From sequence record PV158447.1: a stretch of DNA of 64,000 nt; one strand, 5' to 3'. Shown piece by piece: positions 12,596 through 57,215 of the stretch. Both the position numbers and the translations under genes were made by a program. The notes below the pieces were generated by a model. It saw only the letters and a list, made by a program, of their open reading frames with translations, had not been told where the DNA came from and did no database searches. The stretch's first letter is position 1. The number at the start of each line of letters is the position of its first letter.

Positions 12596-12613
12596 TTTTC
12601 AAATAGATATTAT
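12596..12613 (+). promoter_or_regulatory. putative early (virion RNAP) promoter
   Basis: TTTTCAAATAGATATTAT; motif recurs six times, always intergenic, just after a terminator or hairpin. Confidence 0.75.
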
Positions 12614-12668
12614 CTAATAGAAAGAGTCTGGGAATTTATCTTCCAGAATAACCATTAACCTAAAAGGA

Positions 12669-42960: not shown

Positions 42961-42978
42961 ACTTCAAACAGATATAAT
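42961..42978 (+). promoter_or_regulatory. putative early promoter oriented antisense to the spike gene
   Basis: ACTTCAAACAGATATAAT followed by CTAA; 14/18 match to the consensus, same downstream CTAA as the 12596 and 51848 copies. Confidence 0.55.
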
Positions 42979-42999
42979 CTAATTGGTATCCCCCAGTTA

Positions 43000-46596: not shown

Positions 46597-46614
46597 TTTT
46601 CAGATAGATATTAT
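46597..46614 (+). promoter_or_regulatory. putative early promoter
   Basis: TTTTCAGATAGATATTAT (17/18). Confidence 0.75.
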
Positions 46615-46671
46615 CTTAATGTGCAAGTAGGAGTGATTTGTACATTACCCAACTACTCTAGGAGTGACATC

Positions 46672-51785: not shown

Positions 51786-51814
51786 GAGGTAACCGGGGAC
51801 TCCCCGGTTACCTC
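51786..51814 (+). terminator. near-perfect palindromic hairpin/terminator
   Basis: gaggtaaccgggga-c-tccccggttacctc, 14-bp arms. Confidence 0.75.
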
Positions 51815-51847
51815 TACCTTTTGTATTATATTTTTAAGTTCCATTTT

Positions 51848-51865
51848 ATTTCAAATAGATATTAT
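51848..51865 (+). promoter_or_regulatory. putative early promoter
   Basis: ATTTCAAATAGATATTAT (17/18). Confidence 0.75.
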
Positions 51866-51904
51866 CTAAATGTATGTTCAATGAAATGTTTAATGGAGTA
51901 ATCG

Positions 51905-52945
51905 ATGTCTGATATAAAACACTTTGTGGCGTTCTCCGGTGGGTTGGACAGTACTTGGATTTTGTATACACTCTTGAAAGAAGGTCACCGTGTCGTTCCT
52001 GTTCACGTTTCAGTAGGTGCCGCCACTTCCCAGATGTTACCGGAAATGTTGGTTAAACGAGAAATGCTGAAACGACTGGGGGAAATGTTTCCCGATCAGA
52101 TTGTTGATGAGGAGTATACCAGACTTCCTTCTCATCCCCTTAACATCACTGATGGGGTGAACTGGAAAACAGGAAATCCTTATCCGGGGGATTTGATACG
52201 CGACACACTTATTCAGCAACTCTGTGTTCGCAATGCACTGGTGAATTGCCTGATTGCAAATCGACCTACTGACAGGTTTTACGCAGGGTGGCATTCTACT
52301 GATATCCCGAGTACATTTAATGAAAGGTACTATCAAGATTTGACTAGGCTGGAAACGATTTACAACATCGCCGATACCAAGTACATCAACCGGTTTTCTG
52401 ATTGGGCAAATCTTTCTCCGGTAATAGAAACCCCTGCTTGGAATAAATCTAAAGTAGTGATGTGGGATGATATTCCGGAAAGTATCCGCGAATTGATCAT
52501 TGTTGGGAAATGTAGCGTGGTCGAAGAGTTCGGTCACAATCAGATACGGATGGAAATTAGTAATGCGAAAGTGGGGGAGTATCTTGAACTTGGGATTGAA
52601 GTTAGTACCACGTTTGTTATGCCCTATCCAACGCTGGAAACAGATATTCTTTTTATCCATTCCAATATGTCTGGTATCGATAACACACCACTGCAATTTC
52701 AAAATGAATTGTTACCTTTCTTCACCTACCTCCAGAATTGCGTGAAGGGAGTGGGAGAAAGAATGCGCTGGCCAGGAACGGTTGGACAGTGGGAACAACG
52801 TTTTATGGTACACCTTTCCCGTAACCATAATTTCAAAGAAGAGATCACGAATCCATTAGCCTGTCCCGATGGTCGTGGTTATGTCGTTGCCAAACCCAAC
52901 ACCCCACCCCCGGTAGAGGAAGTGGAATTAATAAAGGAGGTCTGA
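51905..52945 (+). CDS. queC: QueC-like PP-loop ATPase (divergent; no Zn motif)
   Basis: FVAFSGGLDST, FYAGWHSTD and IETPAWNKSK map onto QueC motifs; no CxxCxxC. Confidence 0.7.
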   Translation: MSDIKHFVAFSGGLDSTWILYTLLKEGHRVVPVHVSVGAATSQMLPEMLVKREMLKRLGEMFPDQIVDEEYTRLPSHPLNITDGVNWKTGNPYPGDLIRDTLIQQLCVRNALVNCLIANRPTDRFYAGWHSTDIPSTFNERYYQDLTRLETIYNIADTKYINRFSDWANLSPVIETPAWNKSKVVMWDDIPESIRELIIVGKCSVVEEFGHNQIRMEISNAKVGEYLELGIEVSTTFVMPYPTLETDILFIHSNMSGIDNTPLQFQNELLPFFTYLQNCVKGVGERMRWPGTVGQWEQRFMVHLSRNHNFKEEITNPLACPDGRGYVVAKPNTPPPVEEVELIKEV

Positions 52946-53328
52946 TGAAACCGCACACCCGGTTACTCATCAAAGCGTTAACACAACGAAGGCAGTATCA
53001 TCATGTCGATGCTGTCAGTCGTGTGGTAGAAAGAGAAAAGGAACGGAATGAGTTAATTCTCAAGTTATATGGTGAGATAAACTCCCTTCATTCTGAATGT
53101 CTCTCAAAAGGGACCTCAATCGCTCTGAGAGAGGTCCGGCAATCTAAAGAGGGTGAATGTATCTGTTTGTTTGTCGACGCCGTATTTTGCGATACAGAGA
53201 CGAATAAATGGTATTACACTTTATCCTCGCCCCTTCCCGCTCACAGGGAGTTCTTTGAAAGAATCAAATTCTCTCTGGAACTGTTCTCAAGTCTTGTTTA
53301 TCAAGAACTGGGTTTAAAACTGAAGTAA
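52945..53328 (+). CDS. hypothetical protein
   Basis: AAGGAGG RBS; TGATG coupling to the QueC-like gene. Confidence 0.7.
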   Translation: MKPHTRLLIKALTQRRQYHHVDAVSRVVEREKERNELILKLYGEINSLHSECLSKGTSIALREVRQSKEGECICLFVDAVFCDTETNKWYYTLSSPLPAHREFFERIKFSLELFSSLVYQELGLKLK

Positions 53329-53347
53329 GCGTGTAATGAACTTAACT

Positions 53348-53375
53348 CCCAAACTCCCTTAATTGGGGGTTTGGG
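53348..53375 (+). terminator. terminator-like hairpin
   Basis: cccaaactccc-ttaatt-gggggtttggg, then ggcttttgttt. Confidence 0.65.
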
Positions 53376-53419
53376 GGCTTTTGTTTGTTTTAGAAGAAAA
53401 CTACTTAGGAATCTGAATC

Positions 53420-57156: not shown

Positions 57157-57174
57157 TTTTCAAATAGATATTAT
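57157..57174 (+). promoter_or_regulatory. putative early promoter
   Basis: TTTTCAAATAGATATTAT (18/18). Confidence 0.78.
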
Positions 57175-57215
57175 TAATATGTAAGTCTTAGGAGTTTTAT
57201 TTAGGAGTAAGAATA

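Follow-up and report, generated by a model that had tools for sequence, protein, structure and literature searches.

The 64,000-nt stretch of DNA analysed here (the window) covers the right-hand end of the record of Aeromonas phage AhC3_1 (PV158447.1; 232,884 bp), and our subject is one of its open reading frames (ORFs), ORF218, together with the small gene ORF219 that overlaps its 3' end. Subtraction of 168,884 from a record position gives the window position, which is used throughout, and 51241-53746 matches the record at 100% identity. ORF218 (XTK85816.1; 51905-52945, + strand; 346 amino acids, aa, in the ORF list and the annotation) is hypothetical in GenBank and receives no mention in the AhC3_1 paper. 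It has been assigned here as a divergent QueC-like PP-loop ATP pyrophosphatase on the basis of PHROG 8825, a family alignment (A1), an AlphaFold2 (AF2) model, fold matches and profile alignment with hhalign. ORF219 (XTK85817.1; 52945-53328, + strand) codes for a basic protein of 127 aa (isoelectric point, pI, 8.7) and has no family assignment. The neighbours of ORF218 in AhC3_1 are an RNase H gene, ORF219 and a gene for a helix-turn-helix (HTH) protein. A preliminary description of this locus had started the feature at 51848, which is not a start codon and coincides with a promoter-like motif (51849-51867); 51848-51904 is a non-coding stretch preceding ORF218.

Three motifs named in that description, SGGLDS, GWHSTD and IETP..NKS, are present at aa 11-16, 128-133 and 174-182, respectively, and all motif coordinates given here are on the + strand. 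The first (51935-51952) is the PP-loop, a pyrophosphate-binding motif that has the form [ST][GAS]GxDS throughout the family. QQLCVRN (aa 104-110; 52214-52234) includes the invariant Q104 and the nearly invariant Q105 of alignment A1, and its R109-N110, retained only in an Aeromonas-like subgroup, occupies the place of RN in the VPxRN motif of QueC. The family-specific GWHSTD (52286-52303), in which G128, W129 and D133 are invariant, takes the position of the G..D and subsequent YPDC or YxDC in QueC and Cap9, and no YxDC comes after it in ORF218. IETPAWNKSK (aa 174-183; 52424-52453), with invariant P177, W179 and K183, is the counterpart of PF(x)4K in Cap9 and of the conserved lysine in QueC. 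These equivalences with QueC and Cap9 rest on sequence position.

Compared with the median of about 222 aa for canonical QueC (PMC13329287), ORF218 has about 124 extra residues, near the approximately 130 proposed at first. They do not form one C-terminal block and are split between an internal insertion of about 38 residues modelled with low confidence (aa 62-99) and a tail beyond about aa 235. In the tail (aa 236-346; 52610-52942, + strand), the model has short helices of moderate confidence, and disorder is predicted for the last 28 residues; the tail is poorly conserved in the family except for D247, no solved structure covers it, and it does not resemble an added domain, so that the novel C-terminal extension of the preliminary description is not supported. 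The AF2 model as a whole has a predicted local distance difference test score (pLDDT) of 77.8 and a predicted template modelling score (pTM) of 0.81.

ORF218 matches PHROG 8825, a group annotated as function unknown, over aa 6-239 (1.2e-22), and both this group and the protein YP_009153413.1 of phage SPN3US, which is 27% identical to ORF218, are of the same family. A HMMER search of 1.84 billion cluster representatives gave 22 matches at E<=0.001, about 18 of which are full-length family members, while a spurious immunoglobulin-domain protein (P0019) and the PP-loop-only matches P0020 and P0022 were among the others. Since only 22 of so many representatives match, the family is rare. A search of the phage collection gave 62 matching records at E<=0.01 and 70 at E<=1; the carriers among them are phages of 197-294 kb infecting Salmonella, Erwinia, Escherichia, Proteus and Aeromonas, and weak matches in Pseudomonas and Vibrio phages are restricted to the PP-loop region. 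Those carriers that have been cultured are jumbo phages and for the most part Chimalliviridae, to which the genera Seoulvirus, Wellingtonvirus and Chaoshanvirus belong, and the AhC3_1 locus is collinear with those of the Chaoshanvirus phages CF8 and AerS_266. With the family profile, one copy each was found in AhC3_1, AerS_266, Kwan and SA002 (1e-78 to 1e-90). A word-based protein search gave one relative each for ORF218 and ORF219, a viral-contig scan with ORF218 gave no match, and BFVD contains additional proteins of similar structure from other jumbo phages, among them Miami, RSF1 and Noxifer. Judged from these sequences, ORF218 belongs to a small, previously undescribed family of giant phages; literature searches returned nothing on PHROG 8825 or a QueC-like family of jumbo phages, and no paper joining the PP-loop with jumbo phages or with DUF488.

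In alignment A1 (20 members), G13, D15, S16, Q104, G128, W129, D133, P177, W179, K183, K222 and Y226 are invariant, and E47, Q105, M186, W187, G230 and D247 are nearly so. These positions persist at an overall identity of 20-40% (21-30% for the members from SPN3US-like and Erwinia phages), and ORF218 has the complete shared set, i.e., PP-loop, QQ, GW.xxD, TPAW..K..MW and K...Y...G. No cysteine is conserved in A1; CxxC is absent from ORF218, whose five cysteines are at 107, 115, 203, 279 and 320, and from 18 relatives, in agreement with the original remark that the CxxCxxC zinc motif is lacking. All members are acidic, with pI 5.3-6.7. Between ORF218 and its homologue in the collinear metagenomic relative L011, there are 78 synonymous and 33 non-synonymous codon differences, corresponding by a rough count to about 0.04 per non-synonymous and 0.31 per synonymous site, and these rates indicate purifying selection.

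The Pfam QueC profile gives 18 bits on ORF218, against a cut-off of 22, and covers aa 7-41 only; this PP-loop segment also matches Pfam ArgG, ATP_bind_3, MnmA and ThiI about equally, within the first 40 residues. The NCBIfam QueC profile (TIGR00364) gives 14 bits against its cut-off of 150.3, and Pfam QueC matches at E<=0.01 in only 7 of the 20 family members. No PADLOC model matches ORF218 at E<=1, and hence there is no QatC or Cap9 match. When the 20-member family profile was aligned using hhalign with P0020 and P0022, probabilities of 98.8 and 98.6% were obtained over 182 and 167 columns, respectively. These two proteins exceed the Pfam QueC threshold of 22 bits over their full length (36.1 and 25.5 bits, respectively), have kept Cys-rich C-termini, and have the N-terminal 65 residues and a P..K..W..LP segment in common with the zinc-less family. 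The IETPAWNKSK segment aligns to this P..K..W..LP segment in P0022, and the hhalign alignments run through P..K..W..LP..I. By their sequences, P0020 and P0022 look like evolutionary intermediates toward the zinc-less family, and from the profile alignments to them we regard the family as a divergent branch, without the zinc site, of a viral lineage of QueC-like proteins. Both proteins (L013:6001-6816 and L014:1468-2169, respectively) are encoded on phage-like contigs that are rich in ORFans and show no que genes nearby.

The fold of the AF2 model was compared without bias with 48,161 solved chains, and the best match was Cap9 (Z 13.1, root-mean-square deviation 2.7 A, 173 of 181 residues), followed by ThiI (11.6), QueC (11.6) and YcfA (11.3), with the remaining PP-loop families at 9.4 or below. 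A second fold comparison gave Z of 10.7-10.8 for QatC, up to 12.2 for YcfA and 11.5-12.0 for QueC. The Rossmann-like fold is recognised at Z of about 8 or more in members of about ten PP-loop families, over model residues 1-200 to 1-230. Foldseek gave YcfA (top) and QueC as best matches, the structural neighbours of ORF218 in the ESM Atlas all belong to QueC-family clusters, several of them viral, and a search of PDB sequences with the A1 profile was led by the nitrile synthetase ArtA, Cap9, MesJ and QueC. The modelled fold thus agrees with a QueC-derived origin of ORF218. In view of the profile alignments (98.6-98.8%), the fold similarity (Z 13.1) and the codon differences (78 against 33), the observation of a QueC-like enzyme is not attributable to chance.

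Canonical QueC is defined in a 2026 survey of PF06508 by SGGxDS, YxQxHxxE, VPxRN, YPDC, a conserved Lys and C(x)8CxxCxxC, and Y35, R99, Y131 and Y189 are essential in the E. coli enzyme (PMC13329287). ORF218 has counterparts only of the loop, of the Glu after strand 2 (E47), of a P-x5-K segment and, as in the Aeromonas-like subgroup only, of the RN pair (R109-N110); the zinc ribbon with C(x)8CxxCxxC, YPDC or YxDC, and YxQxHxxE are absent from ORF218 and its family. The statement that the window contains no queD, queE, folE or dpdA could be extended to the whole 232,884-bp record, in which profile searches at E<=1 found no TGT (tRNA-guanine transglycosylase)/DpdA (PF01702), QueD/PTPS (PF01242), GTP cyclohydrolase I/FolE (PF01227) or radical SAM/QueE (PF04055), while control genomes gave matches in these que-pathway searches. 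The record also contains no class-V aminotransferase, as would be expected of a YcfC-like partner, and no CD-NTase (SMODS). The family member of AerS_266 (WNV45795.1; L008:3998-4897) is named "queuosine biosynthesis protein queC" in GenBank, and this name is probably wrong, because the zinc and substrate motifs and the pathway are missing.

The position of ORF218 between the RNase H and HTH genes was compared among related loci. In the metagenomic relative L006, the order is RNase H, a 349-aa homologue that is 39% identical to ORF218, and HTH; in AerS_266, it is RNase H, a 329-aa protein, the ORF218 homologue of 299 aa, and HTH; neither has ORF219. In CF8, RNase H is followed by a 337-aa protein unrelated to ORF218 and then by a homologue of ORF219, and a profile search of the whole CF8 genome found no ORF218 family member. 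The slot between RNase H and HTH behaves as a swap site for accessory cassettes. The 337-aa protein of CF8 (CF8_0145; L007:3864-4877) and the 329-aa protein of AerS_266 (L008:2896-3885), which both occupy this slot directly behind RNase H, have 35% identity with one another and are unrelated to ORF218; CF8_0145 has a weak sub-threshold match to HEPN_LA2681.

ORF219 had been proposed as a coupled partner of ORF218. The coupling itself is clear: the start codon of ORF219 lies inside the ORF218 stop codon (TGATG at 52943-52947), preceded by AAGGAGG at 52934-52940, and this overlap with a strong ribosome-binding site is found in both AhC3_1 and L011 (Logan ERR15804848 contig 249). These two collinear sequences are 78-96% identical over the genes from the ligase to ORF218 and 97-100% identical from about 52,900 on (ORF219 to ORF223), and this step in identity, at about 52750-52900 of the window, points to a recent recombination junction at the ORF218/ORF219 boundary. 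Since the pairing of the genes is not kept in L006, AerS_266 and CF8 and the junction separates them, ORF219 is not co-inherited with ORF218 and, as far as sequence comparison can tell, is not its dedicated partner. ORF219 has no Pfam, PHROG or PADLOC match; its relatives are one 98%-identical metagenome copy and CF8_0146 (28% identity, E 5e-16), and its model is poor (pLDDT 64, pTM 0.44), with a long helix, a beta-hairpin and a helix at low confidence.

All-against-all BLASTP of flanking proteins from seven loci gave no neighbour common across lineages, and the family gene is located beside head-maturation genes in SPN3US and Kwan. In SPN3US, a gene with a DUF488-N3a domain (PF22751, 1.3e-11; L003:5953-6336, YP_009153414.1) overlaps and follows the ORF218 homologue, without an equivalent in the Aeromonas phages; in Erwinia phage Kwan, the domain is found 2.6 kb downstream in a gene annotated as GIY-YIG, and in SA002 at a distance of 108 kb. 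DUF488-N3a was considered as a partner and rejected, being unrelated to ORF219, absent from the three Aeromonas phages and distant in Kwan and SA002. A region of PS1 reached via ORF221 was non-syntenic and was discarded.

We consider that ORF218 is probably a catalytically competent, adenylating PP-loop ATP pyrophosphatase of viral QueC-like descent that has lost the zinc ribbon and the residues for 7-deazaguanine. The motifs, family conservation, fold relationship, missing pathway genes and gene-order variation were observed directly, and on them we infer ATP use, adenylation chemistry and a substrate class. Because the loop is kept in every member, about a dozen positions are invariant and the gene is under purifying selection, the protein can be read as an active adenylating enzyme. 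The preliminary description had regarded ORF218 as an orphan, repurposed enzyme derived from QueC, and this idea has held up, given profile and fold homology to QueC, the lack of 7-deazaguanine pathway genes and the lost substrate motifs; according to the profiles, the motifs and the gene search of the whole record, ORF218 neither groups with canonical QueC nor is accompanied by a full dpd pathway.

In the proposed reaction, Mg-ATP would bind the PP-loop (S11-G-G-L-D15-S16), and a carboxylate or lactam oxygen of the substrate would receive the alpha-phosphate, with the substrate seated in a predicted family-specific pocket of Q104/Q105, G128-W129-H130..D133, P177-W179..K183 and K222/Y226. Pyrophosphate would depart, and an amine or a small-molecule nucleophile would then displace AMP. 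ORF218 would act without a dedicated neighbouring partner, and in AhC3_1 the two-gene unit would be transcribed from the promoter-like motif, with terminators at both ends. From the sequence, the substrate is read as other than a deazaguanine, and our confidence in any particular substrate is low. Since no cysteine is conserved, sulfur transfer through a persulfide or an iron-sulfur cluster is unlikely, and the acidic pI and the lack of an RNA-binding domain speak weakly against RNA or DNA as substrate, so that a small molecule or a protein is more likely. The invariance of Trp, Tyr and Gln residues would be in keeping with a ligand that is planar and base-like. A location in a cassette slot of variable content, flanked by RNase H and HTH, suits an accessory role in the interaction with the host.

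Several observations weigh against this interpretation. The SGG of the loop is replaced by SAG or TSG in some members, with SAGLDS in the SPN3US copy; beyond the first 40 residues, the likeness to solved enzymes is structural only (14-16% identity); and residues 62-99 and 319-346 of ORF218 are modelled at low confidence. In addition, the accessory role has been drawn from patchy presence in only three Chaoshanvirus-like genomes, and wide retention of the gene among SPN3US-like and Erwinia phages would fit a more central function as well.

The closeness of the model to Cap9 and QatC brings up a function in counter-defence, in which ORF218 is an enzyme or mimic directed at deazaguanylation immunity, i.e., the type IV cyclic-oligonucleotide-based antiphage signalling system (CBASS) with Cap9 or the Qat system with QatC. 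QueC-type enzymes were recently found to have functions beyond preQ0 synthesis, in that Cap9 and QatC ligate a deazaguanine base to a protein N-terminus by QueC chemistry and thereby arm bacterial immunity; the phage protein could capture the target N-terminus or the 7-carboxy-7-deazaguanine (CDG) donor, or put a different adduct on the host immune protein. Cap9 (PDB 9NTO chain B), the best structural match and closest solved fold, has the SxGxDS loop, the P-x5-K segment and the compact Rossmann-like core in common with ORF218. It differs in its length of about 185 aa, in keeping F/YxQ(x)5E, RN, H(x)4YxDC and CxxCxxC, of which ORF218 has only the RN pair (R109-N110), and in being encoded with a CD-NTase, the TGT-like Cap10 and Cap11, while AhC3_1 has no SMODS or TGT match. 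QatC (PDB 9Y01 and 9Y02) resembles ORF218 in fold, in a remodelled QueC active site with SGGxDS kept, and in extra N- or C-terminal segments. It has a variant zinc motif, a motif set of its own and the neighbours qatA, qatB and qatD, whereas ORF218 has no cysteine motif and no PADLOC match, and its annotated and scanned neighbours include no qat partner. The variable cassette slot with patchy presence among related Aeromonas phages, the acidity of ORF218 and its variable C-terminal tail would also be compatible with counter-defence. However, an acidic, loop-intact protein without a PADLOC match gives no specific pointer to it; the deazaguanine in Cap9 is held by Y115 and D117 (of YxDC) and R86, and Y115 and D117 have no counterpart in ORF218; and a gene serving narrowly in anti-defence would not usually be kept by so many SPN3US-like and Erwinia phages at 21-30% identity. 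We therefore think counter-defence unlikely. There is a similarly small chance that the family represents a third case, carried by phages, in which the QueC scaffold was put to a new use, and that, like Cap9 and QatC, it ligates a carboxylated base-like molecule or another acyl donor to a protein amine or else intercepts that reaction.

Modification of RNA, in the manner of ThiI, TilS or MnmA, by adenylation of a base in host or phage RNA is another explanation to which we assign little probability. A ThiI-RNA complex is among the top folds (Z 11.6, model residues 1-319), MesJ/TilS and MnmA follow at Z 9.4 and 8.9, respectively, and the invariant tryptophans and tyrosine could stack on a base. 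Against this, ORF218 has no detectable RNA-binding domain such as THUMP or PUA, the family pI is 5.3-6.7, no sulfur-carrying cysteine is conserved, and the 64-kb window has no tRNA gene.

The adenylation of a base is also known from YcfA, the enzyme that adenylates C6 of a guanine nucleotide in 6-thioguanine biosynthesis of Erwinia amylovora (PDB 9KQ6-9KQD). YcfA is of the adenine-nucleotide alpha-hydrolase type, has catalytic Asp19, Gln129, Glu134 and Glu183 and no reported zinc site, and activates the guanine lactam carbonyl using Gln and Glu on the strand-4 loop. The fold similarity of ORF218 to YcfA (Z 11.3-12.2) is tied with those to QueC and ThiI, and the position of this loop corresponds to that of GWHxxD(xxE) in the ORF218 family. 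Sequence similarity is not detectable beyond the PP-loop, and YcfA works with the pyridoxal-phosphate-dependent C-S lyase YcfC, while AhC3_1 has no class-V aminotransferase, though a host enzyme could serve. The strand-4-loop resemblance may be taken as a lead by analogy.

Slightly less likely than counter-defence or RNA modification is a protein that has no catalytic activity and retains the Rossmann-like scaffold, such as a regulator that binds nucleotides or a structural component needed during infection. Such a role would accord with the loss of all substrate-side motifs of QueC, with the SAG or TSG loop of some members and with the location beside head-maturation genes in SPN3US and Kwan, but the invariance of G13, D15, S16 and about ten residues near the predicted pocket at 20-40% identity is a pattern typical of active sites.

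Synthesis of preQ0 from host-made CDG by a canonical QueC, for modification of phage DNA or tRNA, is very improbable: the family is homologous to QueC (PF06508 cluster 1; 3BL5 and 2PG3) via intermediates, with the same fold, SGGxDS, conserved Glu after strand 2 and G..D motif of strand 4, the N-terminal part has a weak Pfam QueC match and the AerS_266 relative carries a queuosine annotation, but both profile scores are below threshold (Pfam 18 against 22 bits, TIGR00364 14 against 150 bits), the zinc ribbon, YPDC and YxQxHxxE, with residues essential in E. coli QueC (PMC13329287), are gone from a protein about 124 residues longer, and DpdA/TGT, QueD, QueE and FolE are missing from the whole phage record.

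In about 60 jumbo phages that have no que pathway, purifying selection has preserved the ATP loop of a family that has neither the zinc site nor the deazaguanine residues, and the family is therefore a good candidate for an adenylation chemistry that is new and acts for the phage in its conflict with the host. The survey of the QueC superfamily takes in only Pfam-recognised proteins and would miss the ORF218 family with its sub-threshold scores; its ten largest clusters contain nothing like this family (PMC13329287). The present results correct "queuosine biosynthesis" annotations in such phages, define a set of residues for mutagenesis (S11, D15, Q104, W129, D133, W179, K183, K222 and Y226), and advise that the adjacent small gene should not be presumed to be a subunit. 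If ligation of a base to a protein, or its interception, were true, nucleus-forming jumbo phages would have their own nucleobase-protein conjugation or a counter to deazaguanylation immunity.

The layout of the putative transcription unit could be read from the sequence, and all of the following elements are on the + strand. There are two strong hairpins resembling intrinsic terminators, each with a 13-bp stem and a T-run after it: that at 51786-51814 (9 G-C pairs) ends the RNase H unit upstream, and that at 53346-53377 (8 G-C pairs) ends the ORF218-ORF219 unit. A GGAG ribosome-binding site precedes ORF218 at 51895-51898, and the AAGGAGG site and TGATG overlap for ORF219 (52934-52947) are inside the 3' end of ORF218. 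The 19-nt promoter-like motif TTTCAAATAGATATTATCT (51849-51867) is 37 nt upstream of the ORF218 start codon. With these hairpins at both ends, ORF218 and ORF219 appear to form a self-contained two-gene transcription unit. The motif TTTCAAATAGATATTATCT has six matches in the window at three or fewer mismatches, against 0.03 expected, and five of them are on the + strand upstream of genes (12597-12615, 42962-42980, 46598-46616, 51849-51867 and 57158-57176). In an alignment of the copies (A2), the flanks are also conserved, with TTTTTAAGTTC..ATTT upstream and AATG downstream, and the motif is probably a promoter class of a phage RNA polymerase. Early expression of ORF218, as supposed in the preliminary description, may be read from this repeated motif only; the sequencing runs in which the stretch occurs contain it as DNA or contigs, and contigs carry no information on expression. 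A sigma-70-like match on the minus strand (51825-51854; TTGAAA, an 18-nt spacer and TATAAT; 11 of 12 positions) overlaps the TTTCAAATAGATATTATCT motif in the AT-rich intergenic region and is probably a chance occurrence, since the regional total of such matches is below the shuffle mean.

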